Below are positions 3,062-26,700 of a DNA stretch of 64,000 bases, one piece after another. The DNA comes from Gracilinanus agilis. Lineage: Eukaryota. A program made the position numbers and the translations under genes. The notes beneath the pieces were generated by a model that did no database searches, was not told where the DNA came from, and was given only the letters and a program-made list of their open reading frames with translations. How positions within the stretch are numbered: the first letter of the stretch is position 1; the number at the start of each line of letters is the position of its first letter. Location of the stretch: assembly GCF_016433145.1 (NCBI RefSeq), contig NC_058131.1, forward strand, positions 610,622,645 through 610,686,644, read 5' to 3'.

Positions 3062-3247
3062 TCATTGTCCCCCTTGAAGCTTGTGGGCAATGGTGAGGAT
3101 GGTCTTCAGGGCAGGCATGAAGCCAGACACCTCACTAAAGCTGCTGCTGCTCACCACCTGGGTGTGCACCACCAGGGCCTGCTCGTAACTACCAGTATCC
3201 ACACATCGGGAGACCTCATGGAGCCCAGCCAGAACGTTGGGAGACAG
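3062..3247 (-). CDS. SEC31B: SEC31B last exon, coding part
   Basis: 186 nt, [12 protein letters not shown]...[19 protein letters not shown]. Confidence 0.96.
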
Positions 3248-6200
3248 CTGTGAGGGGACAGAAGGCAACACTGGGTTAGGGTCAGTGGGTTTCAGGGGAG
3301 AATGCTGGCCTTCCCTGTGTGGCTAGGAGATGTAGCTCAAGAAGAAAAAAAGGGGAGGTACCCACCATTCCCTCCTGCAGCTTCTCATACAGGTATTCCA
3401 ATCTCAGGGCCACTTCCTCCAGCTTCCGTTTTGTTTTCTGAAAGTAAGGGAAGAAGATGTATGAGTGTGAGCCTGGCTGGGGGCCAGCATCAGACAGCTC
3501 TTTCATCCACCTTGCTATGGTCAGTCAGTCAGTCAGGGCAGGGCCTGAGCTGGATGTCATCCCTACTGCCCCTGAACAAAGGTGCCACTGTGAGCGACCT
3601 TCTCTCTCTTACCCTCAGGGATTAGCCTTTCCAGAGCATGAAAGGAAGTCAGGGGGCTGAGCAGGGCTCCCATGGCTGGAGGGGGTGATAAGTTGGAGCC
3701 CGTCCTTTGGGGAAGGGGCAGGGCAGGATCTCCCACCTCAAGGTCATACGCACAGGGTCAGAGGCTGACAGGGCACAGCGCTGGAGAAGGGCTTCAAAGC
3801 TGGTCTTGAGTGGCCGGTGCTCTGGGGGGATCTCCTTCTTCCTCACTGGTTCAGGTGGCAGCTGCTGTAGCTGCTGATAAATGAGACAGACAGAGAAGTC
3901 AGATGGTTAGGTCAGTCCAGACAGGACTACAAGACATAAGAGACCAGGCTGTATTAACAGACAAACTGTTTTTATCTCACATTCCCCAAGGACTGACTCC
4001 ATGGTCCCCACAGTGTCACTTTGATCCCTCTGGGAAAAAGGGGGCTCTGGACCAACAGAGAGGGAAGTTAAACTTAAGGTCTCTGTGCGCAGGGGGATTG
4101 GGGGAAGAACCCACCCCTCCCCCAGCCTCCTTCATTCCTCTTACTTGTAGACTAAGCTCTCCTGGAGCTCCTGGGGGAGCCTGACCCATGCCAGAAAGTG
4201 AAGGGCCGGGTGAGCAGGCTTCTCGAGGATTAGGGGGCAGATTCCCGATAGGAGCAGTGATGGGGGCTGGAGGTGTAAACATCTCAGGCAGCTAAAATGA
4301 AGCATACGAAAGGCTGCAGGTCCAGTTAGGAATCTCCTTGGGCTCTTACAGAAATTTGGAGAGTAAAAAGAGTGAGGGTGATTGAAGCAGTGGGTGGATA
4401 AATGAGTTTCTGGTGTGTGTGGGGAAACGAGTTGAACCAGGGTACTTGTGGAGGGGGTGGGCAGAGTGGTATGCATGAGGGGCTAACCTTTGTTCTTTGG
4501 AGGCCTCCCTTGGAAGCTGAGGTATCTCTGCAGGGTTCCCGGAGCCCTGTTGGGGCATGGAGGGATGGACAGGAAGAAAAATAAGGGACTATGGTCCATC
4601 AAGATGAACAGACCTTCCCCTCCCCTGCCAGCTGGAGCCAATACATACAGTTATTCATCTTCAACCATTTCCCCTATGTAACATTCTCTAACCCCACAAG
4701 GCTCCAGATAGTGATAGAAGGTAGACTGCTTCAGAAAGGAGCTTTCTAAAGAAGACCTGACTGATGGGGGAAGCCCTGTGGGAAGGAGACAGGAGGGACA
4801 AAGGAGGAAAAAGAAACTGACCTGTCTGGGGTTCCAGGATGCTGGTGGCTGGCAAAGTTCTAGAAACTGGAGCACCAGGCCCTCCAGAAGGACATGTCAT
4901 AGGGAAACTAATGGGAGGAACCGGAGGTTGGGAGCCAGTGGGGGGCGGTGGGCCAGGCCCAGGGGACCAGGCGGGAAGGGAAGTGGATGGGACCCCTGCT
5001 AGGAAAGTAGAGCCGGGAAATGACACTGTCTGAGAAGCCATTGGCGGAGGTGGCCCAGGGAAAGTCTGGGCACCTGGGAAGCCCACAGGACCGGGGGCCT
5101 GGGTCTGCTGCACTCCCAGCAGCTGTGGCTGAGGCAGAGCTGAAATGGAAATGGGAGAGAGGTCAGGTGACCCTTAGAGCCCTGACCCAGAGAAAGGAGA
5201 ATTAGGACATGAGCCCAGGGATTGTTCAGAGAGGGGAATGGGAGAATGGCACCTGCCATAAGCAGGTCGGAACTCAGCCAGCTTCTCCTAGTTCTTCTCT
5301 ACTCCTATCAACTCACTCACCTGTCCCTACTCTAGGACCTGGTGGGGGAGGTGGAACCAGCCGGGGGCCTGCTGCCCTAGAGTCCCTAGTGGTCTGGGTT
5401 CTGGGGTTCTGATAGGTGCTTGGGTGGGTGAGGGCCAACGGCATCGTTGCTGAGGGCTGAGACATGAAGACCCTTGGTCCTGGGGGTGGAGCTGAGACCT
5501 GTGGAGAGAGGGGGTCCACATATGAAATGGAAGCCAGGTGATTAGGGAGGAGATAGAGAAGAAAACAACTCCCCATTTTCCACTGCTAGAAATGATCTAT
5601 TGCCATTATAAGGCCAGCCAGGAGATGGCTATGTTTATTAATCCAATCTGGGCCTTGGGAGGGGAAGGGTATTCTCTCACTTAGGGGTTCTCAGCACGTC
5701 CCTGATACCCTCGACCTCAAGATCTGAGATCCACTGTTTGAAGGAGTTAGACCTAAAAGGGGCCTGCAGAATGATCCACTCCTTGGTTCACAAATGAGAA
5801 AATTGAGGTGTAGAGTTTAAAAGATTTTCCTAAGGTCATAGGAGGCAAGGAAGCAGAACTGGGATTCTAACCCTGCTCTTCTGTCCCTAAATGCAATGTC
5901 CTTTCCACATATGTGAACCCAGAAGACACACTTCCTCACCTTTCCTATCCCACTTCAAAGAAGGCCTCACCTGGTGAAGGGGCCGGAATCCTGCAGTGTG
6001 GAGCCGGACTCCAAGGCCTCTAGGCTGGGGAGAAGATCTCACAGGGATCCGAGGAAAGGGGAAAGGAGGAGGCTGCTGATTCAGGAGCCCAGGCCCCTGG
6101 GCATGGAAGAGGCGATCTCTCAACTGCTGGACAGGAGGCTGCAATATCAACAACATGGAGAGATAGAACAAAAGCCCAAGCTGACCTGACCTCCTAAGTT

Positions 6201-9200
6201 CATCCATCTTTTCCTCTATCCCTCCCTCAGCCCAACTCTGCAAGGGGATCACTCACTTGAGTACAGTGGCTGGGAAGATAGCTCATGGCAATGGCAAGGC
6301 TGCCCTGCGCTGCCAGTAAGCTGGCATACTGAGTAACTCTGTGGGCTGTGACAGGACCAGAGACTGCCCTTTCTGGGTGCTGGAGCAACTCTGGGCTCTT
6401 ACTAAGAACCATCACCTTCTCCATCAGGTCCTTTGGTGACAAGAAGAAGAAAAAAGATAAGGGTAAGAAGTCCTTCCCTCCTGACTAGCTTCCAGGGATT
6501 CAATATCACAGAGACTTCCCAGGGAGTATGATTGGGGCATGGCCTTCTGACTAAACCCTGATATCTGTGAGGAGGCTATTACCCACAGAAAAAAGTTTGT
6601 TATTCTCTGACTCTGACCACCATCTTCTTCTGTTCAACCTGCTCAGACCCAACCAAAGTCATCCTCTTCCTTCATTCCAACCCTGCCTTGCCCCAAGAAG
6701 GCTCCAAACCCTGAGGGCCTCACTAGTCCCCAAAGTCTATGGTCCTAGCTTTTCTGATCCTGTTGCAGCAGATCCCAGATCATGGCCATCAGTGCCTGTC
6801 TCGGTATCCAATATCCAGGTATCTCATACCTGCAAAGTCATGGGTAAAGAAGTCTGGTGGATTTTCATCCAGCACTCCACCAGCCGCTCCACATTTCCTG
6901 AGCAGATGTAACAGAGGCAGGCTTCAGCAGATAATGTTCCCCCACCTTCCTGCTCTAGGCGGATTCCCAGCATATCTGTAGGGAGAAGGAAGTTTCACTA
7001 ATACTGGAAATCCTAGCTACCTCATCTTGCCTCTCTTCCAGAAGGAAACCTGTTAACCAGATGGCATAGGCTTTATGGCTGGATAGGGAAGCATGGCACA
7101 CCTCAGATATGGAACGGCAGTTAGATAATGATAATAGCCTGCCTCGTTTGACCAGGGAGATGTAGTGAGAAGAAAGGAGGCTCAAGGCAGAAGGGAGAAG
7201 GCTGGGCATACCTACCACAGAGCTCAGGGAAGTCTTGGCGGCCACAATGTGTCAGCAGCAGGGCCAGAGTCTCTTTCCAGTTCTTCAGACTGCATGAACA
7301 TACTACGTTCTTCCACTTCTGCTCCACCATGCAGGCCAGAAACTATTGAAAAGTAGAGAAAAGTTTTCAGCACTGAGGCTTAAGGGCACAGAGGAGTGGG
7401 TGTTGGGAGGAAGGGGTTCCCCACCAGCCCAGTGGCTGGAAAAGACCACGTGCAGGGTACACTGCCCATGCTATACTATTATCACACATGTCCCAAGTCT
7501 GTGTCTCTCCTCCCTGGTGACTGATACATACTGAGGCAATGCTGGACTTCTTCTGGGCAAAGTAGCGCTGCTGAGTTTTCCGCAACAACTTATCCCCACC
7601 AATTCCAGCCAGGATGATGGCATCCGCAAACCTTTCCTCCTTCAGACAGAGTTCCACAGCATGACCCAGTTCTCCCAGCAGCAGAGCCTGGCTTAGCAGC
7701 CCATCAGTGTCTGAAAGGACCAACCTCTTTCAGTCAAATCACAGATCCAGGGCTTTGTTTCACCCCCAACATTCTCTTCATAAACATAGGACCTTGTTCC
7801 CTTTCCCACCAGAACCTTTAACTCGCACCAACCACCACTACATAGAAGACCCCTCACAATGCCCACCAGATCCAAGCCTCCCATTATTCTCCCCTAATAT
7901 ATAAGACCCATAGCTCTCATCCCCTTACCCAGCTACAGAACCTGCAACCTTGATAATTCCCCTTACTTGACTCTCTGCCCAGGTCTCACCCCCCACCCCG
8001 GGGGTGGGCCCAGGAATATTCCAGCTTGGGGAGGGGCCTGTACTTCACTAAAACTGTATATTTCGTGGAAGAGATTATTCAGTTGGTATTAGAACCTCTT
8101 TGTCCCTCTGACAGGAAGGCAGGAGGACTGGGAGAGGACACTACATGCACTAACCAAGCCAGTATCTTCTATTAAGCCCTTCCCACCAGGCAATGGGATG
8201 GACCCACCCTGGAAAATCATCTCAAAGGAAAAGCTCAGACAGTGAGACAAAGCAGGAGAAAAAGTGAAGTTGATGGGAAGTGGAAAGATACTCTTTGTAC
8301 CCAGGAAATGTCTCGCACATGACCTCTGTTCAGAGGTGGCCCCTCCTCTCCCATGCTCCATATGGGAGCATGGGGCTTATTGCCTGGGTTTGCACAAGCC
8401 TGGACACAGTTCTCCCCCAGATGGGGGCACCTTCTGTGACAGGGATCTCCAACGGGGTCATGTTCTGAGGGACAAGCTCATCAAAGAAGGCAGAGGACGC
8501 AGCAGATTCCTCCGAAGAGCGTCTCGAGCCCTGTACCAGGAGGGGGAGGATGGAGAGAGGTGACAACCCAGGGTCTTCGCTCTAGGTCACAGCCTCTTGG
8601 CTAGCTAGGGGAGCCCCTCTGTGAGTCCATTCCCTCATCTATGCCCTCAGAGGAGAGAGTGGGAAGGGAAAGGATGAACAAGCTAAGGCCCAACCCCACC
8701 TTGGGTTCTATAGGCACCTGAGGAGCCAAGTACTGCAGGGAAGGTAGCCCAAAGCCCCAAGACTGCCCTCCCATGTGCCTTGAGAATGTCCCACCACACC
8801 TGCCTGCAGAAGGCTTGTCTGTTCCAGTGGAGGTCACCTCCTTTGGGGTGAAGACTCTCACCTACTTCTGAACCACTCCTCAAACATGTGGCCATCTGCA
8901 GGAAGAGAGCTTTGAGCATCCTCTCAGACTAAGCCCTCTGCCCTCTACTGCACACAAGGACATGGGATAAGAACTGTGGTGAGTGCTGGGGGAAACAATG
9001 GGGCTGCAGGTTATATTCTCAGATGGGCTCACACCCCACTGCCTTGAGGCCTTGCTCCCTCTGTTTGCTCATCAAGACTCCATGAATCTTTTGAGGGACC
9101 TGTCTGGGAACCTTTGGCCATCGTCCTCCAGAGTCTAAGAAAGGAAAAAGGCCCAAGCCCAGGGGACTAGGAAGGAGCCCAGTTTCTGTGTCTCTTCTGA

Positions 9201-12200
9201 CAGATTTTCTTGCTCCCTGAAACTGTCACAGGTCTCTGAATTGGAAAGCAGCTCACCTTCTCGTATAGCTCCTCCTTACTATATCCTAACAGCTTGAGGA
9301 ATTTGATCCTGGATTCCTTTTCCAAAGTGGCCTAGGGAACAGAAGTAAAGTCAGTCAATTAATGATTGGACCTTTCCTGAATCACATTTAACAGGGGATA
9401 TTCCAAAAATTCAAGGTTCTCTGTATTCCTGAAATGGCTTGGGCTGAGGTCTCAAACGACTTATGTGAGCAAAGGCAAAGGCCATCTCTCCTTCAATTTG
9501 GTGTCCTGCCCTGAATGCATAAGAACAGACTTCCCTTTAACTGCCCAGAAACTGAACTCTTTCTGTGCTCTGTTTGACTCCCAAAGGCACTGAGTCCCGT
9601 TTTGTACCTCTCTGTTTCTCAGACCTTGTGTTCTCCACACAGTGCAGGGGGGACTAACCCACTTTCTGCTGCCCTCTGATAGAAGCCGAGCTTCCTTGGT
9701 CTCTTTCCAATCTAGGCTTGCTACAACCTTTCCCTATTTTTCTAACTTGGCTCTTTGCACTTCATTTGATGGTTCTGCTCAGCATGACTCTAACAAGAGC
9801 TCCTCCTGTGGCCCCTTTCTCTTGAGACGCTAACCTACCTAGCTTCAGTTACAACTTAGACTGATGCCTAGTGATCAGTTGTCACCCAAACCAACCTCTG
9901 ATGTCTCGGGAAGACCCAGCTTTTGCTGAAAAAAATCAAGGCCATTCACCATGAGCTCCTTCTTGTTGCCTCTTCCTCATCTCCTATCACTTGGGTGCCT
10001 TCTTTTATTTTTGTCTCCTTCACTTACACTTCACATGATAAGGTAGCCTTGCTCCTTTCCAAGGTTAATCCCTTTACATGTTCAAACAGTCCTATCCCAT
10101 CCTGACTCCTCTGCTAGACCATCCCATGTGTTATTCCCACTCTTTTACTTATTTTCAATCTCTCTCTGTCTCCTGGCTCCTTCCCTACTGTCTACAAACA
10201 TGCCCATGTCTCCCTCATCCTCTCTTGAGCCTTCCATGAACACTTACTAGCATCCTATATCTCTTCTGGCCTTTATAATAACTAAACTCCTCTAAAAGAG
10301 ATGCTTCCATTTTCTCTCCTCACTTTTTTCTTAACCTCTCAAAATCAATCTTTGGATCTTATTCTACCAAAACTGCTCTCTCCAAAGTTACTAATTGTCT
10401 CATAGCTGCCAAATCCAATGGTCTGTCTTCTATTCTCTTCTCTTTGACCTTCTTGCAGCCTTTGATGACATTGATGACTCTTTCCTCTTTGAGCCTCCCT
10501 TCTCTCTAGGTTTTCAGGATACCACTATCTCCTGGTTCTCATCCTACCTATTTGTTATGAGTAATTTATATACTATATGACTGTTCCTTCTCTGTCTCCT
10601 TTGCAGGATCTTCTCCCAGATCATGCTCTCTAACCATAGATGTTCCTCAATGTACTGTCTTTGGGCTCTCGTCTCTTTTCTCTTGATAATGTTATTTGGT
10701 TATCTCATCAGCTTCCATGGATTTAATTACAATCTGTCTCTATGCTGATGATTCTCAACCTACCTAGTCTGACCCAATCTCTTTTCTGATTTTTAATCTT
10801 ACATCTCCAATTACCTGTCAGATATCTCAACAGGGATGTCTAAGTAGACCTCTTAAATTTAAAATGTCCAAAACAGAACTCATTATCTTTCTACCTAAAC
10901 CTTCCCTACCTCTTATCTTTCCTATTATTGTAAAGGGTAGCACTATTCTTAGTTCAGCGATTCCCAAAGTGGGCGCCACCACCCCCTGGTGGGTGCTGCA
11001 GTGATGCAGGGGAGTGGTGATGGCCACAGGTACATTTGGAGGCAGTGAATAACTGTAAAAGGGGGCGGTGATAGTATGTGACAGGGGGCGCTAAGTAATA
11101 TTTTTTCTGGAAAGGGGGCAGTAGGCCAAAAAAGTTTGGGAACCACTGTACTTAGTTCCTCAGGCACAAAACAGAGGAGGAATCCCAAATTCCTATCTTT
11201 CATCTCCCACATCCAATCTATTGCCAAGGCCTACTGATTCCATCTTCACAACATTTCTTAAATGCCTCTCCTCACCTCTGCCATTGTCCTTGCCCTGGTG
11301 CAGGCCCTCCTCAATTCCTGCCTGGACTATTGCATCAGCCTGCTGGTCCTTCCCAACCCCAGTCATTTCTCCATCCCACTGTGATTCAGTCACATCACCC
11401 CACTACTCAATAAACTCCATAGACTGCCCAATGCCTCTAGGAGCAAATGTAAAATGCTATTTGGCATTCCAAGTCCTTCCTAACCTCATTCCCTCCTGCC
11501 TTTCCAGTCTTCTCACATCTTATTCCTCATCATACCCTTTTCAGTCTAGTGACACTGGCCTCTTGGCTATTCTATAAACAAGATCCTCCATCTCTTGGCT
11601 TGGGTTTTGTTTTTTTTTCCTGGCTGTCCCCCATACCTGCAATAGTCTCCCTCTTCTGCTGTGATCATTGACCCCTCTGGATTCCTTTAATTCCCAACTA
11701 AAATCCCTTCTTTTATTGGAAACCTTCCCCAACCCCTCTTAATTCTAGAAACATTCTTTAGTTAATTATTTCCTGTAGCTTGTTTGTACATATTTGTTTG
11801 CTTGTTGTCTCCTTCATTCAATTGTGAGCTCTTTGAGAGCAGGTGTCTTTTGTGTCTTATTGTATCCCAAAACTAATAAATATTTGCTGATTGATTGATT
11901 TCTAGCTCTTGTGCTTTCTCTCCAGAATCCATCCCTATTGGTCTCTAGTTAACATTATTCATCTTGTATAGCCATTTATCTCTGGCCTCTCCACCACTAC
12001 CTTTTCATTCTTTCAGTCATCAAAGTATTGTGTAAAAATATTCTGCATCTGAAGGAAAGACCTGGAATCCTTTTCTCCTGGAATCTTCTGCCTTGCTGTT
12101 CACCTTTCCAGACTCTCCCTGACCCTCCGTCTCTCCTAGCATCTCACCCTCAGTCAATGTGGCAGCTTCTCATTCCCAGATACCAGTCTATGCCTAGTTC

Positions 12201-14678
12201 ATGACTAGGGAGCTAGCCTGGGGTTGCAGCCTCTAAACAGACATGGGCATCCAATGAGCCTCATACCTTTAGGAATTGCCAGATGTCCTTCTCAGAGGGC
12301 AATGAAGCTCGCTGGATCTGACTTTGACAGTAATTCAGGAGACTACCTGACCCTAAAGCCTCGTGAAGTTCCATGGACCGTGCCAACAGCTCAGACTCTG
12401 TGGTAACTTGACTGATGAAGATGAGGTGAGAGATAGGCTGTGGTAATTGCTGGGTTGGGGGGCTGGGCAGACCAAAGGTGACCAGTTTTCCCCCAAACTG
12501 TAAAAAAAGAAGAAAGATCACACGTAGTCTACTCACATACTAAAGACCAGAACATGGTCTGTGCTTTGTTCTCCCCTCTTTCAATCACCACCAAAGAATG
12601 CTGCAACTCAGCGAGGGGAGTCACTGTTAATCCTGCATCTGAATTCCAGTTCTGCCACTTACGTGACGCTGGAAAAGTTACTTCACCTCTTAGGCCTGCG
12701 TTTCTACACTTTAAAATAAAGAGGTTGGACTGGATAGTCTTTATGTGTGCTTCCATCTCTGAACTCCAATCACCTGATGAGTAAGAGGAGCTTGGAACCA
12801 CTAGAGAAGGAATGGGGAGCCAGCCACAGAGATAGGCTGCTTAATGCATTTGGACAGACTGACCTGAAGAGAACTCCTCAGGCTTCAGGCCACTGCTAGA
12901 TCCCTAGGGAACATGCCTTCTACAACCAGGAGTCCCAGCCAGGACTGAGAAGAGTGAGTCCTTCTAAGCTGTGCTACTCAGTGTTCCAGACTTCACTACA
13001 GACATTTGTTCTCTAAAAATATCACCATCCACATTATCCCAGTTGGAAATCCTTGCTGTCACCTTTAACTCTTCTCTTTCCTCTCCCTACTTCTCCAGGC
13101 TGTCATTTCTTCCTTCAGATCTTGGATACTTCTCACCTCTTGCTCCCCAATGCCACCATTAGTTTTGGTTCTCATCACCTTGTTCCTGGTCACTGCAATG
13201 GTTTCCCAATTGGCTCCTCTGCCTCCAGGATCTCCCTAGGCCAAGCTGTCTTTAACATCAGTGTCAAATTAACATCCCTACAGCACACAGAGTCCTGCCA
13301 CTACTCTACTCACAAATCGTCCTCATTGGCCATAGAAAGAAAGCCAAACTCCTCTGACCACCAATCGAAGTCTTTCTTTGCAGTGTTGTCTGCTCTCCTA
13401 TGGGCACCCTTGGCTTCCTGGCCCCAGAACTCACAAGGTTTACTCATGTATCTGGGTCTGCCTCCCCACAAAGAGTGTTCTTTGCTTTTCTCCTTGCCCT
13501 TCTAAACCCTTTCCATCTTTTAAGCCCCAGAGGAAGGGCCATCTTTTTCATGTTTTCTTTGATTCACTAGCCTATATCAACCCCCCCTCTGAATTCCTAT
13601 GGGTTCTTAGTTTGAATCAAAGTTTGGATACTTAACTATTACATTTGTCTTCCAGAAAAGGCTAGAAAGGAATACATCTGCATTGCTCTTTATAGTTTAC
13701 GAATGTTTTTTTTTTTAAACCGTTAACTTCTTTGTATTGGCTCCTTGGTGGAAGAGTGGTAAGGGTGGGCAATGGGGGTCAAGTGACTTGCCCAGGGTCA
13801 CACAGCTAGGAAGTGTCTGAGGCCAGATTTGAACCTAGGACCTCCCATCTCTAGGCCTGGCTCTCAATCCACTGAGCTACCCAGCTGCCCCCAAATGTTT
13901 ATTTTTTTAAAAACCCTTACTTTCTGTCTTAGAATCAATACTGAGTATCACTTCCAAGGCAGAAGAAGAACAAGGGCTAGGAAACAGGGCTTAAATGACT
14001 TGGCTAGGGGTCACAGAGCTAGGAAGTGTTGGAGGTCACATTTGAACCCAGGACCTCCTGCTTCCAGATCTGGCTCTCAATCCACTGGGCCACCCACCTG
14101 CTGCTACAAAGTGTTTTACAAGTCATTATCTCATTTTATCTTCATAGGTCACCATATAGCACAATAGAAAGGGTGCTAAATCTGAAGTGAGAGGATCTGG
14201 GGTTCAAGTACTAGATCTGCCATGTACTTCCTGCGGGTCACAAAGCAAGTTGCTTAACACCTTTAGATCCCCATTTCCTTATCTGCAAAATATAGACATT
14301 GAACTAGAAGACCTCTACAATCCCTTCTGGCTTGAAATCTATGATCCTGTGACCTTCTGAAATAAGTAGAACAGGTATGGCTACTTCTATTTTACAGATT
14401 CAGAAACTGGTTTATCAAGGCTGCTCCATCCATCAGACCATGTTGTCTTCAATGAAAGGTCTTTGGGGGAAAGAACCACGTAAGACTGTTTCCTCCAAAG
14501 CCCCCAGGAGGGATTTCATAGGAACTAAGACTGAAGGGAAAGTGAACTAAGCCTATTCATTTTGCCAATGAGGACAATGAAGCCTAAAGAAGTGATTCAT
14601 ACAAGATAGCATGTAAGAGACATCACTTTATTCCTGCTCATTGACCCTATATATGCATGCGTGCACACACACACTCAC

Positions 14679-14743
<65 letters not shown>

Positions 14744-17700
14744 GACAAGAGAAGAACAGAACTTACTGCAAATGAGGCACCTGTTGGCCGACGAACCCAT
14801 TTTGGGGGCTTCTTCAGTGGAGGAATTAAGTTGGTGTGGGCCACCTGCTCCGGTACCTCCAGTGGAGGAAGAGGATGGCCAGTGCCAAATGGATCAAGGC
14901 TACTGAAAGAAGATGAGATCTGAAGGCAGAAGCATGGATGAGTCAGTAGTATGAAGCAGAAGACCCAGCCAAGGCCTCAGGTCACATAAATGCCAACCCA
15001 CAGCAGCCTGGGCTGCCCTCAAGAGTGCTAGTTTCTAAAATCTGTAGCTGAGAGAAGGAAACAGAGCCCGCCGCAAGTCAGGGTCCACCCTGGGATTTGA
15101 CTCCAATGATATTCCCTGCAGGGCATGAGAGCAGGGGTGCTAGGGTATAGCCTTCACCTTTCTAATATGCCTCATGAAAGGGAGGATTAGAAGCTGCCAG
15201 GCTCTCTTTGAACATAATAACAGCAGCAGCTCACATTCACTGAGTGCTTTAAGGTTATAAAAACACCTGTACAAAATAGTCCTTAAGGTAAGGAATATTA
15301 ATATCTATCACAAGGATGGGTATTAGAAGTGTTATTCTTTTCCCTTTTTTATAGATGAGAAAAGGAAGGTCCTGTGAGTCCCCCAAGGAATAACAAAGTC
15401 AGAGCCTAAACCCCAGGTTCTTGACTCCTGGGCCCAAGCCGTTCTCATGGTGCCAACTTGCAAAGCCTGACCCTCAAAGTGCTGGCCACGTCCAACCTAA
15501 GCCACAGATTTCAGAACAACTGGCACTGCCTGTCTCCTTGAGTGAGAGACCTCAGAGGAGTTTGGTTCCAAACTCATTGCTGTGCCCTGTGCCCTGGCTG
15601 CCTGCTCCAGTCACAGTTTCCCCTAGAGCCTACCATCCCCACCCTTTGCCTTCACCTTGTCGGCTTGGGTCTTCTGCTGGGCTTCCCAGTTTCCTCCCAT
15701 GACTGAGTACAAACTGATCCAGCCATTGAAGGAGGCAGCTGAGAATACTGGAGGGTTCCTTGGACACCACTGGACATCAAAGCACCATCGGTTCTGTGTG
15801 GGCAGCTTATATACCACCTGATGTAGGGAGATAAAATCATCACGGCCCAGCCCCCAACAAGGCAGACCTGAGCACATGCCTCAAAGAAGAGCTATCCCTC
15901 CTGCCCCTGCATTGCCAAAGTCAAACTCTTGTGGCTCTCCAAAGGTCTAGCCCCCAGAGCATCACCTTCTGCCTCCTCCAACTTCCCTCTCGTCCTCTAC
16001 TACCTGCTCCTGGGGCAGCCCCTGCCCACCTCTCCGCTTCCCAGGTTCCAGCACAGGATCTGGTTATCTTTGGCGCTACTGAGCAGCAGCTCTGGGTCAG
16101 CCTGGCTCCACGACACTGACAGCACTCCCCTAAAAAGTCCAGAAGTCAGAAGTCACTCCATTATGGCATCTGTTTCTCTCCTGAAGGATATGCTAGTGCG
16201 AAAAGTACCAATTAAGACCACCTAAGCAGATGGCATCTATTTAGAATGAGGTGTTGGGCTACTGTCTATCCCTAGGAAGGCAATGAGAACTTGACCTTTG
16301 TCTTGTGAAGGAAGGTTCAACAGCCAAATATGAGAGATTTGGCTATGTGTGGGCTACAGGGCGGCAGCAACAGTTCTTGGGGCACAGCTTGCAGGGAGGT
16401 GCCAGCCGTTGTAGGGGGTCGAGGTTTTGGAATCTCAATTTTAGCTGTTGTTAAATGTCTTGGTGAAGGTAATCTTGATATCTAGAGGGCTAACATAGAT
16501 GAAAGCCTGAGGGAATCTCCCAAAGAGGGTAACTGCTGACCTAAATAATCTCAATGACCCCTGGCTACCCTTGGAGGCCCTGCCAGGCTAATGGCTGGCT
16601 AAGGCCTTCAGTGCCAGCAATAGCCATGCACTATGAGGCTCACAAAACCCATGAGGCCTGAAGTGGATGGCTAGAATCTCAGACTGTTTTCCATGATCCA
16701 GAGGTCCGCAGCAATCCCTCAGGGACCTATGGTCTCAGAGCTGTAGGAGCAGGGCCAAGAACCCAGGTCAGCTACCTCCCAACAACGATGGAAAGTCTGG
16801 CACTACCTGCTATGGCTGTCCAGCACTTTGAGTGGGGATGAGGCAAACCGTAGGTCCCACATTTGGATCACTGGAAGGCGATCGTCCTCAGAGCACAGCA
16901 CCAGCTGTGTAGCCACTTCTGGATGCCAAGCCAGGCCAGAGCAGTGCATCTGAGGGTCAAACAGGTCCCACCTTACACTGTGTCTGACCATTCTATGTTT
17001 AACTCCAGCCAGGCTGTGAGCTCCCTAAAGTGAGGGCATTGCTTCTTTGGTCTCCTCCATGGAGACATGCCTGATGCCAGCCATATGCTAGGCATTAGTA
17101 AAGCGCTGCTGGCTCATGATGAAGGAAGGTAGAGGCTGAGTACCAAGCAGGGAGGTGGGCCACCTAGGAGACACCCATACACAAGTGTTTGGCTCAGCCT
17201 TATTCAGCCTTGTGCTCTCATTAGGCAAACTAAAGATATTGACAGGCCCACAATCCCAGCAAATGCAATAGGAGGATGTGATGGGGATAAGAGAGGCTAG
17301 GGCAGAAATACAGGATGGAAAAGGAGCTGTAAGTACCAAGACATCCAATTCAAATATTTATGAAGCAAGTGTGAACTTAGGGGCCTGTCCCTAGGACAAC
17401 TGCATGCAGCAAGTCCTTTGGGGCTGTGCTGGGAATGGGAAGGGGGTATGTTGGGCTTTGTCACTGCAGCCCTGGCTTCATCTCAATGTGCCATTAATTA
17501 ATCCTGCAATTACAATCAGTCAGGGGAAGCCAAGGGCCTCTGACAGAGAAGAGCTCCATGAACAGCGGTGTCTCCTTTGACCATGAGGGGCAGAGGGGAG
17601 ACAGCAGAAGGGGATAGGAGGTGGAGCAGGAAGAAAATAAGGGATACAGAAAATAGGAAGAAAAACCAGGGGGGTACAAAGGGGGATACCTACTCCTAAG

Positions 17701-20700
17701 AGCTTAAAATGTAATGGTGAGGGACAGCTGGGTAGCTCAGTGGAGTGAGAGTTGGGCCTAGAGACAGGAGGTCCTAGGTTCAAACACGGCCTCAGCCACT
17801 TCCCAGCTGTGTGACCCTGGGCAAGTCACTTGACCCCCATTGCCCACCCTTACCAATCATCCACCTATGGGACAATACACCGAAGTACAGGGGTTTAAAA
17901 ACAAACAAACAAACAAACAAACAAAAATGTAATGGTGAGGGGACAGCTAGGTGGCTCAGTGGATAGACAACCAGGTCTGGAGACAGGAGGTCCTGGGTTC
18001 AAATCTGGATATAGACACTTCTTAGCTGTGAGACCCTGGGCAAGTCACTTAACCGTCATTGCCTTGCCCTTACCACTCTTCTACCTTGGGGAACAAATGC
18101 TTAGTATTGTTTCTAAGACAGAAGGTAAGAGGGGTTTTGTTTGTTTGTTTGTTTGTTTGTTTGTTTGTTTGTTTGTTTGTTTTAAGTGCTGAGGGTATTC
18201 AGAAGGAGATATCCAGTAGGCAGAAAGTGAGAGGGTCAGAGGTCTCCTGCCAAGTCCTGTATATGAGCAATCATGTAACCTCTTTGTGGCTCAGTTTCCT
18301 AATCTATGACAACTGAAGTCTTGAAAGTGAAAAGCAAAGGTATAGATATAAAATAGAACCAAGGGCAGAACCTCAGGTGGGTCCAGTTTACATTTAAGTT
18401 ACATTTAAGTAAAAGGAGGAGCCAGTGAGAGGGACAGAGACAGGGCATTCAGAGGGGTTGAAGGAGAGTGTGAGGCACTTCCATCACTCACCCTATTGCT
18501 GTGGTCGCTGACCTTGATGATGGGCTCATTCTTCCTGAGGTCCCACACCACAGCCTTACCACTGGGATGAGCAGAGGAAAGGATGTGCTGGACTTGCTGA
18601 TTCCAAGACAGAGCACTAACATCCTCTGGAGGCTGCTGAGGCAGAGATGTGCCACTGTAGGGCCCGGCACCCTTCTTTTCAGATCATGGGGTGCCTATTG
18701 CTCTGGTTAACCAGATAGAGGCCAAGAGCAGGTGTAGACTGGGACACCATCCCAGAAGAATCCCAGGGAGCAAGAGCAAAACTTTTAGGAGAAGCCCTTT
18801 GAGCTGTGAAGTTGCTGGGAAGGGGGATTTTTAAGCTTTTGTCACTTGGACCATCCTGATTCCATCTTAATGTGCCACTGACCATTAGTTAACTTAGCAA
18901 TGATAATAGGTCAGGGAAAAGCCAAGGGCCCCAGACAAAAAGGCTTTTTCGGCAGTTATGGTGCTTCTGACCATGCTCAAGGTGGGTTAGGGGGTGTATA
19001 AGGGCCAGAGAGCCTTCGCACCACAGGGAGAATGAAAGAGAGATAACCATGAGAAATATTCAAGGAGAAACTCAAGCTAGAAAATACCTAGCTGACAATG
19101 CCAATAAATTCAAACACAACTTACCTCACGATACTGCAAGCACAAGGGAGGGAGGGGACAGGAAGTAAAGAGAAGACAATTACAGAGTGACAGGCAGACA
19201 CAAACAGACACAGGCAGGCAGGCAAAAGTATACTTCTGAATGGAAAGTCTGAATTTCCCCCTTCCCAGAGAAGTTAGAAACTCATGCCAGGAATATTGAT
19301 GCTCCCTCCCTGCCTGATATAGGGTTGGGTGCCTCCCTCCCTTTCCAAAGGACCCTTGAAAGAAGTCCTGGGTAAGAAGGACAGATGACAGCCTTGCTTT
19401 TGCCTTGCTTCCTAACCCTATCCTTCTCCCTCCAAAAGACTCTTTTCCCAGCTCTCTACCTACTCTACCTAGAAGATTAAGAAAGGTCCTTGAGAAAGAA
19501 GGTTTGCTGCTCCCTTATAGGGAGTACCATCTGGCAAGCAGTTTCACCCCTTCCCTTTAACCCTTCACCTCTGAGTTATCATCATTTTACTACCATTGCC
19601 TTTTTTTTTTTTGGTTATGGAGCCTCAGTGCCCCCCAGTGGCATAATCAGGAGCAACCTGGCTCCCAGCTTCCCCCAAGGACAATTTTATACATTGGCCA
19701 TACTGCAGCCTCACCTGAGACTTGGATCCTGGCATCATTGGCACGTTAAAATTATTCAAATCCCAAATGAAGATTTCTGAATCATTTGCTCCTGAGGCCA
19801 GGAGGTTGCTCTGTATGAAAAACAGAAACATAGTGGCCTCCCCATTCCCAGGGAAAAAGAAAAGACAAATCTAGGCCCCTAGCACGGAAGGTATTTAAAC
19901 TGAGGGGGACCAAGGCCTGTCCAGGAACACCCATGAGAAAATGCCCTTCTCAGTAATATATTAGAGCATGAATTGAAAGCTAATGGGGTTTCAACAGCAA
20001 ATGACTTGCAGGCATACCTGGAAAGGATTAAAGTCAAGGGCTCTGACAGCACCTGTGTGCTTCTCCTTCTGAGCAATGAGAGGTTCCTTCCCGGAAGTCA
20101 GGATTTGGGATACACTGAACAGGGTGAGCACACCATTGTCCCCTCCACCTGCAATGACCCCAGAGCCTTCAGGAGATCCACTGCTAAAATTCCCCCAGAT
20201 CAGCTTGTGAAACCTGTAAAGAGAGGATCTGGTCACACCGGCATAAATTCAGAGCTACAGCGTCCTGTAGTAACTAGAACAAAGCATCAATCTCTCACCA
20301 TTCATGGACATCTTTATATCCTTATACTCATCACAAACTCACACTCCAACACAGTGACTCTACTTCCTGCCCAGTCCTGACAATCCAGTCAGTCCTTTCT
20401 CAGGCACTAAACAGATGTTTAGCCCACTTCCTTAACCAGTGGAGGAAGTAGAGGGCCATGGCCTCAGGGCCAGAAAAAGAGTCTACCTTTTCTCCAATGC
20501 TTAGCAGATTGCCTGGAATGTAGCAAGGGCATAATAAATGCTTTTTATTCACTCAAAGGGATAGGCTACTTCCCCACAAAGACAAACAAAATTTTCTTTC
20601 TCCTGTTCTGAGGCATCATCACCATCTTCAATGTCCATATTTATATATTGCTTTCTGATTTGTAAAACATTCTCTACGACAACCCTCTAAGGGAGGGAGA

Positions 20701-23700
20701 ACAAGTATTAAACATATTTTATAAAGAAATTGAGTCCCTGAGAAGTTACCTGAGTGGCTCAGGGACACACAGGTAAATACTAGCTGTAAGATCTGGATAC
20801 ATAGCTCTAACCCTACGGGCCTGTTTCCTCCTCTGTAAACAGGAGATAATCTTTAAGGTCTCTCCCAATTCCCAGACATATGATCCTAGGACGTATCAGG
20901 GCTAAATTTCAAACTCTAATCTTCTAGATCCAAAATCAGAACTCTTCCTGGTACTCTGGATCCAGTAACAAATCCCAGTCTGATTGAAAATATTTCTTTT
21001 GACAAAGTAAAGTCTCATCTTTGGGAGAGAAGCAGCTACAACATTTGTTCAAAGTCTCTGCCAGTTGCTGTGTGCCCCCAAAGGTTACTTTCTCTGGGAA
21101 AGCCTCAGAGAAAGAGTCACATGAGAATATACAGCCCATTCTGAAAAGAAACCAGACTTCTGGGGAGACCATTTTAATCAAGTTCCCAGAATCTGTACAA
21201 GGAAAAAAGAATGTTCAACCCTATTGAGTGAAAAGGCATTGTAGTACATTGTTACCCTTTTTCTAAAAGATCAGAGCAAAATTCAGGCAGCATGTTGTAA
21301 GATGTGGGTTCTACTCCCAGCTCTGCCAACATCTCACTCATCATGTATATGACCTTCAGAAAAATACTTCGCACTGCAAGGCCTCAGTATCCTCATCTGT
21401 AAAATGAGTAGCCTGGACTAGCTAGATTTCTGTTAAGGTCTTTTTCAGGTCTAACAAACTATCTCCTATCTGGAAGTACAATGGGTTAGATTAAGCACCA
21501 ATGATAACAGTTAAGAATTCATGAGATTCACTTATAAGCCTCTTTATCTTCTGGTTCCTTTCTAACTGCCTAAGAACATTTTTTTATTCTTAAGAAGCCT
21601 TCACTTAACCCTGTCATGCTCTAAAGCTACAATTTTTTGTATCTTTCGGCAAACTTTGGAAAAAACTATTTACATTCAATGCCTACATTTCCTCACTTTC
21701 ACTCACATTTCAACTTAATAATAATAGCTAGCAATTATATAGCATCTATTATGTGCCATGCACTATGCTAACTATTTGCAAAAAGATGATCTCATTTGAT
21801 TCTCACAACTCTGGGAGGTACATACATTCCTATCCCATTTTACAGTTGAAGAAACTAAGGCAAATAGGACTTGCCCAAGGTCACACAGCTAATAAGTGGA
21901 TGAGACTGAATTTGAACTCAGGTTTTCTTGACTACAGGCACAGTGACCTCTCTATTGTACCACTTTTCAATCTGGCTTCTTACCCCAGCTCTTTACTAAA
22001 ACGGTTCTTTCCCAAGTTACCAATGGTTTCTTAACTGCCAAATATAATGATCTTTTCTCAAGATCCAAAAAATTTGTAGTAGCTCTTTTTGTGCTGGCAG
22101 AGAATTGGCTGAACAAGTTATGATATATGGATGTGATGTGGATGGAATATTATTGTGCTATAAGAAATGATGAAGGACATGGTTTCAGAGAAATAAGGGA
22201 AGACATGTATGATCTGATGCAGAGAAATGAGCAGAACCAACATTAACGATGTTTTAAATCAAAAAACTTTGAAAGACTTAAGAACTCTGATCACCACAAT
22301 GAATAGCTATAATTCCAGAGTACTCAAAATGAAACATGTTAATACAGATGTGATGAACACAAGAGTGCAGACTGAGACATATTTTTCTGAATATAACCAA
22401 TGTGGGAATTTGTTTTGCTTGACTATACATGTTTATAACATGAGGTTTTGTTTTTCTTGCTCTTGCAATTGGAAAGGGGTGGGGATGGGAGGGTGGAGAT
22501 TGAATGGGAGGGAGAGAAGGCAGATATTTATTTGAAAATAAAAGGTAATTAAAAAATTAAAAATAACATCTCCCTCAATGGTTTTTTCTCAGTACTCTTT
22601 CCTTACTGACTTTCCTGTAGCTTTTGATAATACTGACCACATTTCTTCCCCCCACAACCTCTTCCTCTATTTACATGACACTGCTTTCATTCTTCTCTTG
22701 CTCAAATAGATCAAACATCTTTTGCTAAGTAGTCTGTTCCCTCTTTGAAGGGGGAAGCTATTTTTTCATTTTGTCTTTACATGCCAAAGGCTGGCACAAT
22801 GCCTGACACAGAGTGTCTAATTAATGTTTATTGAATTGAAGCTTGTTTCCTCATTGGTGGAAACATATTAGAGTACCTACCTCGCAGTGGGCTGTGAGGC
22901 TCAGATTAACTACTTTGACTATATAAAGCTCTTAGTAAATCTTAAGTGCTATATAAGTAATAAGGCATCTAGATGTTGTAGCAGAAAGAACACCGAATCA
23001 GATGTCAGGAAGACCTGAGTTCAAATTCCACCTTAGACAATTACTAGCTGTGTGACCCTGGTTAACCCAGGTCAGCTTCAATTTCTTTAATCTGTAAAAT
23101 GAGATTAATGATAGTGCCTACCTCCCAGAGCATTTATGAGGAAAAAATAAGATAACCTATTTACAGCCCTTTATAAATGTTATCTATTTATATTACCAAA
23201 AGGGTGTTTATTTCTTTAAAATGTTCCTCCACGTGATTACTTATTTTAGTATGTAACATTAGCTGTTTGCCTATTTTATTGAAGTTAAATTTAAGTTTGT
23301 TTATTTAAAAAGTAGAAGCAATGGAAAAGTCACGCTTGTTCTCCAGACTCAGGTAAAGTAGTTGGTGGAGGCATTAAAAAACATAAATCAAAGTTTTTGT
23401 TACCACAATGCCCTATGAAAAATACTAAACTTAAAGCAAAACTCACAATGACAAATAAGAAGAGATAATACTTTTCCTAGGAGAAAACAAAATTTTAAAA
23501 CATTATCTGAAGAGGTGGTATAATTGACAGTGAGGTAAATTCTCATTAGAACAATGGTCAAAATCAATTCTAAATTAGAAGAAAGAATAAAAATGAGAAG
23601 AGACAGGCATGAAGTTGAGGCAACTCCATCCAACCTTACCTATTTAAATAAGTTGTGACTAAAAGTTAAAAATGGATAAAAGATCAGACAATGACACAAA

Positions 23701-26700
23701 CTCACCATCTCCCAAGTTCATTGATAAAAACTTGGGAATCACCCCAGCCAGCAAACATCTGATGTCCTTGTCAAACAGAAAGGTATGGTAGTTAAGGGTA
23801 ATACTGGTTTAGAATATAAGCACACTGATAAAACCTTACCAATAAGGCCAGAGGAAAGTAATAAAGTAACACCACAGAAAACAGTGAGAAAGAGTATAGG
23901 GAAAAACAAACTTGAAGAAAGCTCAATGAGAGACCCAATTAAGCCCTGCCATCCCTAGTGCATTTAAGACCGAAAAAAGAGACAACAAATGGAAAAGATA
24001 TTTAAAGATTTCTATAAGTTCTCTGATCTATCAATGACAGTGGGTCTACCAAATTTAGATTCTTAATGTCACAATCTCTTCTGTTCTGCATAAGGAAGTA
24101 GGAAAAAAAAAAGGTGGGAAGAACAGCTGGAAAAGACCAAGTATGTATGGGATTTTCAGAATGAAACACTTTTGAGGGCACTGATGGATCAATTCAAGAT
24201 ATGTGAAAGAGGAAAAGATACCAGAAACTTTGGGGGGTAAATTCAGACTTTATTATTACCAAAAAAAGAAGACTGAGAAAATATCATTAACTACCATTCC
24301 ATATGCCTACTTTCTTATCTCTACAAAATCTTTATGAGAATAACATACACATAGCAAGGATATTCTTGACAAAGGTTTGAAAAAAGTACAGGCAGGCTTT
24401 CAGAAATGAAATTCTATAGCAGATCACATCCCTATCATGATACAACAAATGGTGAAGATCACCATGCTTACTGTTTGCTGATTAGATAAAGGCATTTGAT
24501 TTTATAGAACAAAATATCACCTTAAGACCTCTCCTACAGCAAGATGTCTTCTATACGTCATGTCAAAATCATATTCAATTCCTTCAAAGATGTAAAGATA
24601 GAAGTAACTTTGTTCAGGATCCTGTATTGTTTATATTAATTAAGGAAAATCAGAGACAAAAACTCACCAAAGGTATTTGCCATGGTAGCTGGACCCAATC
24701 AAAAGAGAAGAAAAATTCCCTACAGAAGATAAAGACTTCCAGATGTTCTTATTTACAAATGATATTGTACTGACTGCATGAAACCCAGGCACAGCATACA
24801 GCCCTCTAAATGAGATCAGAATGTTACAAGAATGTGCATTGCCCAGACTATGCTATACATAGGATAGATAAATAATAGAGCAGGCCCCTAGGTATATATA
24901 TCTTTGACAGACATTGTGGATAGATAGATACTGAGTGAAGCAAAAACTGAACAAGAAGAGAAGGGTAAGCAACTTATGAGAACTGTACTGTACTTTTTAT
25001 TAATTAATCAACATGTCATTTATCAAGTGTCTACTAGCATATGCAAGGCCCCATGTTAAGCACTGGAAATACAAAGACAAAAGTGAAACTATTCCTGCTT
25101 TCAAGAAGCTCATAATCTTTTTAAGTAGATACAAAATGTGACACATAAGATACAAAATGAATATAAAATAGAAACAATATAATCTCGAGGGGAAGACCAC
25201 CTCCGAGAGGATCAGCCTTCACACTCCACTAGAATCCTCACTAAGAAAAGAAATCTGGAGGAAGCCTCTTAAAACACTGGGTGGAACACCAATGAGGGAT
25301 TAAAGGGGGGAAATGGTCAAAGACTATAAAGTGAGGCAGAGATGGGCTGCCGGATGATCTACATCACTGGAGGGAGTCCTTACGTTAATGAGATTCAGGA
25401 TCCAAAGGCACCCAAGTTTCCTAAAGAGAAGGCATACTAGTGTTTAGGGTGGGAAATTCATGGTGCAAAAAATGTCTTAAGTCATTAAAAAACAGTGATG
25501 TCATCAGAAAAATGTCTCATCCCTTCTAAGTTCTATGAGAGAGAATAACAACACTTTCCCCCAAACACCATGAGACAGAATAGGCTGGGTGCATTTCTAT
25601 CCATTGTGCCACTTATATTTTCAGGTTTCCATGAAGAAGAGCCACAGAGAAGTTCTGGATAAAGAATGACTTTTAGGAAGCAGAAACCAAACCGAGAAGG
25701 GTTCCAGTTGCCTTCTGAGACACCAAAGAGTCAGGACTGATCACAACAGAGATCAGGGAATCAAACAGTCATGATCAGATCTGTGATATTCCAAAAACAT
25801 TATTCTAATAAAAAATCTTCAAGAGTTCCCCATTGCCAAAGGATAAACAAAATACAGCCAGCCTGGTTTTTAACCCTCTAAAAGCTGACTCACACCAACC
25901 TTTCCAGTTTGATCTCATTGTTATACTCACTATTTTGGGCAAACTGGCTTCCTCATTGTTCCCACACACTATATTCCATCTCCCACCTTCACATCTTTAA
26001 ATAAGTGGTTCCTTACTTATGTAATGGCCTCTTATGGAATGGGCTCTCTTCTCACCTCTCTACCCCTCAGAATCCTTCAAAGCACAACTCAAGCCCTAAA
26101 CCCAGCAACAAAACCTTCCCTTACCCCCGCAGCTATGAGCTTTCTCTCCCTTTTGAAATGTGTTTGGATTATATTTTACAGACATTTTACAGATTTACTT
26201 GTGTATTTGCCATATCCCTTCAATAGGGAGTATTCTCCTTGAGGACAAGAATGTTAATTTTCCTTTTTGTATCCTCAATACTTAGCACAGTACCCTGTCT
26301 ATAACAGATACTTAATAAATGTTCAGTAAATTAAATTAAATTGTACCTAAACTTCATAAGGAACCAGCAGAGTACAGCTCTCCCAGTCATGGAGAGAGAG
26401 GTCCAGAAGTCTTAGCCAGCCAGGAGGCCAAGAATCACAGAAGCCTTTAAGAAAGATTCATCAGGCACACAAGTGAGTCAGATTTCATTCATAACCAGGA
26501 TGAGAAATGAGCCCAGCACCCACAAAAGGGTACAATCAGTATGGAGTCTATAACTACAATGAAAAGTTAGAAATAATGAAACAACCTGCTGAATCAAGGA
26601 TTAGTGAGAAGGAAATACAAGACTAAGTCCAGTTTGCCAATAATATAATATATTATTATATTAAGGCAGATTTCTATGTTTTACTTAGTATCTATTATGT

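Follow-up and report, generated by a model that had tools for sequence, protein, structure and literature searches.

Absence of the GAP-stimulating tryptophan from the active fragment of SEC31B in marsupials and several placental lineages

The gene for SEC31B, an outer-coat paralog in the COPII (coat protein complex II) coat, lies on the minus strand of a 64,000-nucleotide stretch of the Gracilinanus agilis genome (contig NC_058131.1, positions 610,622,645 to 610,686,644; assembly GCF_016433145.1), referred to here as the window. In its product, the tryptophan through which the active fragment of Sec31 stimulates GTP hydrolysis at the Sec23-Sar1 active site is replaced by cysteine, and the neighboring asparagine by arginine. 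Both stimulatory residues are gone, and the docking part of the fragment and its PPP-type motifs are kept. The first-pass annotation of this sequence had ascribed the change to "this marsupial". The change is present, but it is not specific to the species: Cys-Arg occurs in all ten marsupial species compared, and the Trp has been lost independently in several placental lineages as well, which makes its loss a property of therian SEC31B rather than of G. agilis alone. The interpretation considered probable here is that an ancient loss of the Trp occurred in a fragment that remained under selection, with docking on Sec23 retained and the stimulation of GTPase-activating protein (GAP) activity weak.

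The active fragment in yeast Sec31 and human SEC31A

The prototype of this element is the active fragment of yeast Sec31, a short disordered segment that runs across Sec23-Sar1 and places a Trp-Asn pair (W922/N923) at the GTPase site (PDB: 2QTV; Bi et al. 2007, cited in PMC7594496). This Trp and Asn are the GTPase-stimulating residues (PMC7594496), and it is this pair that marsupial SEC31B lacks. In human SEC31A, the corresponding W-N-D motif superposes on the yeast residues in 2QTV, where it orients His79 of SAR1 and screens it from solvent (PMC12265942). Searches of PDB chains with exon 23 of the window gene, the lemur SEC31A segment or a profile of one of the alignments described below (A1) gave zero matches, the fragment being too short and too divergent. 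The equivalence to the yeast fragment therefore rests on the published superposition of human SEC31A on 2QTV.

The 59-nucleotide exon and its TGC codon

RefSeq protein XP_044521426.1 (P0395) is encoded exactly, over residues 1-1189, by 25 exons in the window, and this exact match takes in the two exons that carry the active fragment (4544-4488 and 4291-4145). The window holds zero N, and positions 4188-4846 have an exact match in the G. agilis assembly GCA_016433145.1 (locus L005). The features concerned, with the exon numbers of the first-pass annotation, are:

3065..32424, minus strand: SEC31B coding region, 25 coding exons, with the Met codon at 32424 and the last codon ending at 3065; residue-by-residue match to RefSeq
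4967..4969, minus strand: TGG, coding for a Trp shared by all 10 marsupials and specific to them (S-L-P-A-W-S-P-G-P), 53 residues upstream of the Cys
4822..5140, minus strand: proline-rich exon upstream of the 59-nucleotide exon (exon 21), ending in I-L-E-P-Q-T plus one base (phase 1); donor G/GT at 4822/4821-4820 read directly
4547..4548, minus strand: acceptor AG of the 59-nucleotide exon ("cag/GG" common to six marsupial genomes)
4488..4546, minus strand: 59-nucleotide exon (exon 22; number 21 of the coding exons), with the core of the Sec31 active fragment
4530..4532, minus strand: TGC (Cys) in the column of the GAP-stimulating Trp, followed by AGA (Arg) in the Asn column; supported by six marsupial genomes and the column tabulation
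4486..4487, minus strand: donor GT of the 59-nucleotide exon ("AAG/gtta" common to six marsupial genomes)
4145..4291, minus strand: next exon (exon 23), which holds the conserved part of the active fragment further downstream

Because exon 21 leaves one base over, the 59-nucleotide exon opens by completing a split codon, G+GG for Gly, after which it continues CTC CGG GAA CCC TGC AGA GAT (G-L-R-E-P-C-R-D); the TGC codon is seen as "gca" on the plus strand at 4530-4532. Exon 23 begins at 4291 in phase 0, and the two other frames of the 59-nucleotide exon give no in-frame join to exons 21 and 23. The earlier claim of an exon of 59 nucleotides whose frame is forced by splice phase is thus borne out by the AG and GT sites and by the RefSeq match. 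A wrong frame was rejected, as the RefSeq model is encoded exactly by the window exons.

In five other marsupial genomes (Antechinus, Vombatus, Monodelphis, Dromiciops and Trichosurus) the exon likewise has 59 nucleotides bounded as "cag/GG...AAG/gtta", with TGC at the same codon. The occurrence of TGC in six independently assembled genomes excludes an assembly error for practical purposes, and this candidate explanation was rejected. At the protein level, Cys-Arg is found in 47 of 47 marsupial models that contain the segment, drawn from ten species of American and Australasian orders. The American and Australasian marsupial lineages split some 70-80 million years ago. The TGC call rests on this agreement between species and not on reads; judged on sequence comparison, the TGG to TGC substitution is real and ancient and is placed in the marsupial stem.

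Two predicted isoforms, koala X3 (P0411) and bilby X4 (P0427), join exon 21 straight to exon 23 and so skip the equivalent of window 4488-4546. The skip shifts the frame, and translation stops after about 20 more residues in koala or 7 in bilby, leaving a protein without the active-fragment core and the C-terminal domain.

That the feature is an artefact, caused by an assembly error at the codon, by a misplaced exon or frame, or by an exon unused in mRNA, is scarcely credible. It would fit the lack of any placed G. agilis read or RNA contig over the 59-nucleotide exon, which for the genomic reads can be an effect of filtering, and the two predicted isoforms without the exon, but has to contend with the identity of the TGC, exon length and splice sites in six independent assemblies, the use of the exon in the annotation models of 10 marsupial species, the failure of the other two frames to connect exons 21 and 23, and the truncated protein that skipping yields.

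Alignment of the cysteine with the Trp column

MAFFT was used to align 66 SEC31 proteins over their last 300 residues, and in a second alignment (A1) the two window exons were entered as separate rows. In both alignments Cys and Arg fall in the columns of the Trp and the Asn, respectively, with no gap between marsupial SEC31B and SEC31A in the motif region. The alignment of the two paralogs is also gap-free from the Trp column to the PPAPITAP block. Lemur SEC31A reads P-Q-N-G-W-N-D-P-P, followed after 10 residues by M-P-E-N-Y-T-P-P-V-P-I-T, and opossum SEC31B reads L-R-E-P-C-R-D-T-S, followed, again after 10 residues, by its counterpart of that block. G-W-N-D-P-P is also found in centipede Sec31 and fish Sec31A. 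The downstream stretch, a basic run and then a segment beginning L-P-E, is kept at fixed spacing without gaps relative to SEC31A, and has an identity of 0.90-0.97 among marsupials.

The marsupial fragment thus occupies the same place in the proline-rich disordered region as that of SEC31A (human W1008/N1009, numbered with exon 24c; PMC12265942). It shares a similar Gly-Pro/Leu-(Gln/Arg)-(Asp/Glu) lead-in and the 15-residue spacing to the L/M-P-E-x-F/Y-x-P-P-x-P-I-T-x-P block. Unlike SEC31A, in which W-N-D-P-P is kept from centipede to lemur, marsupial SEC31B has Cys for Trp, Arg for Asn and Asp-Thr-Ser for Asp-Pro-Pro. The replacement of both residues and the retention of PPAPITAP in exon 23, as noted in the first-pass annotation, hold when the codons are read directly and in the gap-free alignments. 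The motifs that it had cited were also recovered, PQNGWNDPP in lemur and fish SEC31A and GPQDSWKEAP in gibbon and langur SEC31B. Neither alignment places the conserved Trp elsewhere in the marsupial protein.

Trp and Asn columns across vertebrates

Word-based searches seeded with echidna and then Antechinus SEC31B collected about 230 named SEC31B proteins of birds, reptiles, monotremes, marsupials and placentals, and further marsupial proteins were added by cluster look-ups. The two columns read as follows:

Trp column, SEC31A-like and shark sequences: W in 9/9
Trp column, sauropsid SEC31B: W in 114/114
Trp column, monotreme SEC31B models: W in 4/4
Trp column, marsupial SEC31B: C in all
Trp column, laurasiatherian SEC31B (bats, moles, hedgehog, carnivores, horse, rhino, camelid, pig, ruminants, hippo, whale): L in 27/27 species
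Trp column, Myotis daubentonii (P0379): F, a secondary change from the L of other bats
Trp column, Euarchontoglires SEC31B: W in 11/16 species
Trp column, Callithrix (marmoset) and Dipodomys (kangaroo rat): R
Trp column, Jaculus (jerboa): S
Trp column, rabbit and hare (P0005, P0144): Q, in Q-E-F-Q-R-D; two nucleotide steps from TGG
Trp column, aardvark: S
Asn column: N in SEC31A, crocodile and turtle; mostly T in birds; S in monotremes; R in marsupials; mostly K in placentals, with a few Q, R and E

Parsimony requires at least seven independent replacements of the Trp in therian SEC31B and zero in sauropsids. A close parallel to the marsupials is found in Laurasiatheria (cat, cow, horse, bats, moles etc.), where in the same paralog and exon the Trp was lost, a single residue became fixed throughout the clade, the Asn gave way to a basic Lys and PPAPIT was kept. 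The laurasiatherian residue differs, being Leu, also one step from TGG, and arose separately in the placental branch. The SEC31B orthologs of monotremes and sauropsids share the architecture and the downstream block, but have kept the Trp (Q-E-S-W), and crocodile and turtle the Asn too. The Trp-Asn pair is incomplete in every mammalian SEC31B compared, the Asn being absent throughout, so that even primate SEC31B possesses only half of it. Birds have lost the Asn and yet keep the Trp in 111/111 sequences, which shows that loss of the Asn alone does not free the Trp.

Many bird SEC31B models (e.g. P0220, P0245) carry a 13-residue insert, G-F-F-P-W-L-D-P-H-x-D-x-A, just before Q-E-S-W, which is absent from other isoforms. 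Its position is that of the alternative 13-residue exon 24c of SEC31A (PMC12265942). The constitutive G-I-L-D-P-H-S-G of therian SEC31B looks related to this insert.

Selection on the marsupial segment

The SEC31B proteins of ten marsupials were aligned, and mean pairwise identity was calculated in 20-residue blocks. The block that starts at the Cys (1001-1020) reaches 0.97, against 0.61-0.84 over the disordered residues 821-1000; the folded propeller lies mostly at 0.9-1.0. The core of the active fragment and the stretch that follows it are the best-conserved part of the marsupial disordered region. Nei-Gojobori counts for the 59-nucleotide exon and the next exon, made per exon and then summed, gave for the six genomes a ratio of nonsynonymous to synonymous differences per site (pN/pS) of 0.08-0.57. 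Synonymous divergence (pS 0.07-0.32) is similar to the divergence of the flanking introns (0.05-0.30). The low pN/pS and the high identity indicate purifying selection on the segment and no gene decay, and speak against selection having simply been relaxed within marsupials. The case is weaker for the Cys codon taken singly: it is invariant, but by estimate rather than computation one codon could persist by chance over a tree of such depth. Relaxed selection, the other explanation put forward in the first-pass annotation, accordingly suits the Trp column across therians but not the marsupial segment around it.

Identity and integrity of the gene

The full-length RefSeq sequence and the window exons, searched singly, identify the gene as an intact SEC31B. 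Many beta-propeller/WD40 Pfam models match residues ~85-350 of XP_044521426.1, which corresponds to the N-terminal WD40 beta-propeller. The central alpha-solenoid, the ancestral coatomer element shared with Sec16, is matched by PF12931 (TPR_Sec16) at residues 573-702 with 28.3 bits against a curated cut-off of 22. The proline-rich disordered region contains 10 PPP/PPAP/PAPP motifs in Gracilinanus (3-12 PPP-type motifs per marsupial SEC31B), and the C-terminal domain is conserved, with an identity of 0.92-0.98 over residues 1081-1180 in the ten marsupials. Orthology is with SEC31B and not with SEC31A, as the closest named proteins are all SEC31B and SEC31A differs in the motif region. The 77-residue exon at 12497-12267 matched SEC31 proteins in a representative protein library, echidna and rabbit SEC31B among them. 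A pseudogene or decaying gene is rejected on the grounds of purifying selection, marsupial conservation and the exact RefSeq coding match.

Three small RNA-like runs of the same organism yielded spliced contigs with joints at 6975/7216, 7342/7532 and 8529/8799 (plus-strand CT..AC). These joints coincide with RefSeq exon boundaries, and SEC31B is therefore transcribed and spliced.

Functional interpretation

The proposed course of events starts from a mammalian SEC31B in which the Asn was already gone, and in which TGG to TGC would then have replaced the Trp in the marsupial stem. The marsupial protein would still dock on Sec23-Sar1 through the fragment and the PPP-type motifs, but it would lack the indole, whose packing at the Sec23-Sar1 active site orients and shields the catalytic Sar1 His in the case of Sec31 and SEC31A. 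GTP hydrolysis would then be stimulated weakly or not at all, giving coats of slower turnover where SEC31B is incorporated, with canonical stimulation supplied by SEC31A. Retained Sec23 binding and weak GAP stimulation are most likely by analogy with work on yeast proteins and chimeras, and an effect on coat lifetime would follow from them. Sec16 DR1, which cannot stimulate hydrolysis, and Las17, which has no active fragment, still support coat assembly in yeast chimeras, and with Sec16 DR1 the coat is stabilized in GTP (PMC7594496). These chimeras provide a precedent for an outer coat that assembles without the stimulatory pair, although they are engineered yeast proteins rather than a natural vertebrate paralog, and Las17 lacks the fragment altogether. 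On the same yeast work, the suggestion of the first-pass annotation that a SEC31B of this kind binds Sec23, stimulates hydrolysis poorly and gives longer-lived coats is plausible.

Several observations weigh against this interpretation. The contigs of the three RNA-like runs lie elsewhere in SEC31B and none covers 4488-4546. The Arg, Ser and Gln of other lineages show that nearly any residue is accepted in the column, which may thus be of no importance in SEC31B; replacing Trp by Cys would then have had no added effect, the Asn having been lost before. Cys and Leu, being hydrophobic, might retain part of the packing role of the Trp. The upstream Trp at 4967-4969, the only Trp of the marsupial SEC31B disordered region, may serve as a stand-in for the lost one; the aligned placental residue is Arg, and placentals have another conserved Trp further upstream (F-P-G-T-W-P-L-P-G). 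Finally, yeast with full-length Sec31 W922A/N923A is viable, from which it follows that any phenotype could be subtle (PMC7594496).

The main rival is neutral drift, according to which the mammalian stem, on losing the Asn, also gave up GAP stimulation by SEC31B or could do without it, the Trp column then drifted with Cys having no further effect, and the surrounding segment is conserved solely for Sec23 binding. Drift is rather unlikely, though several findings favor it: in therians, residues of dissimilar chemistry (C, L, R, S, Q, and secondarily F in M. daubentonii) have taken the place of the Trp independently at least seven times, against 0/114 in sauropsids, and the Asn is absent from all mammalian SEC31B. 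Furthermore, the human Sec31B disordered region fails to replace that of yeast even though its Trp is kept, whereas the human Sec31A region succeeds (PMC7594496), and SEC31B must therefore differ from SEC31A beyond this one residue. What free drift does not readily give is the subsequent fixation of the new residue (Cys in 10/10 marsupial and Leu in 27/27 laurasiatherian species), weak as a one-codon case may be, or the retention of the Trp by birds that lack the Asn. An improbable alternative is that Cys, or Leu in Laurasiatheria, substitutes functionally for the Trp, with GAP stimulation largely kept and a SEC31A-like coat. The hydrophobic nature of both residues and the strong purifying selection on the segment would agree with such a substitution, but Cys is far smaller than an indole, the paired Asn is missing too, and the Arg, Ser and Gln of other mammals are unfit for hydrophobic packing. 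Moreover, mutation of the W/N pair, which is tolerated in full-length yeast Sec31, harms shortened or chimeric proteins (PMC7594496), and it reduces function both in yeast and in the human SEC31A chimera. Loss of stimulation with retained docking remains the preferred explanation.

Further observations at the locus

Two RNA-like contigs cover one exon pair at window 8529-8803 with joint sites 4 nucleotides apart (8529/8799, CT..AC; 8529/8803, CC..TG); the second joint may come from a contig error at low depth or mark an alternative site that shifts the frame. A 166-nucleotide contig of one RNA-like run (X2) at 4609-4774 lies wholly within the intron upstream of the 59-nucleotide exon and may derive from unspliced pre-mRNA, intron retention or DNA carry-over. 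Another SEC31B intron contains a CT/GA dinucleotide microsatellite at 14657-14760, which produces S-L-S-L-S-L runs in two overlapping reading frames. In Trichosurus, the annotation of the locus (L006) includes a 211-residue Tim17-family product whose gene range covers the entire SEC31B locus on the same strand; this entry is probably a neighboring or read-through gene model.

Implications for SEC31B

According to recent reviews, SEC31B is enriched in cerebellum and testis and its role is poorly defined; they offer no data on overlap with SEC31A. A full-text literature search found no mention of a Trp loss in any SEC31B within the collection searched. For this window alone the feature is modest, a lineage-wide variant of a known motif in an annotated ortholog. 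Its wider use is as a clade-by-clade map of the SEC31B proteins that keep or have lost the GAP-stimulating Trp in a docking segment still under selection. Results obtained with primate or mouse SEC31B, which retain the Trp, may not apply to SEC31B of dog, cow, pig, rabbit or marsupials, in which it is lost.

Therian SEC31B could, more tentatively, be a naturally GAP-attenuated outer-coat paralog. The Trp was dropped at least seven times and its replacement fixed in the two largest clades concerned (Cys in marsupials, Leu in Laurasiatheria), with the docking part under strong selection; this points to, but leaves doubtful, such a specialization. The comparative pattern opens a clear and cheap biochemical test of SEC31B as a possible slow-hydrolysis form of the outer coat. 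If it is one, slow-hydrolysis COPII coats would be a selected function of SEC31B in the tissues in which it is enriched.

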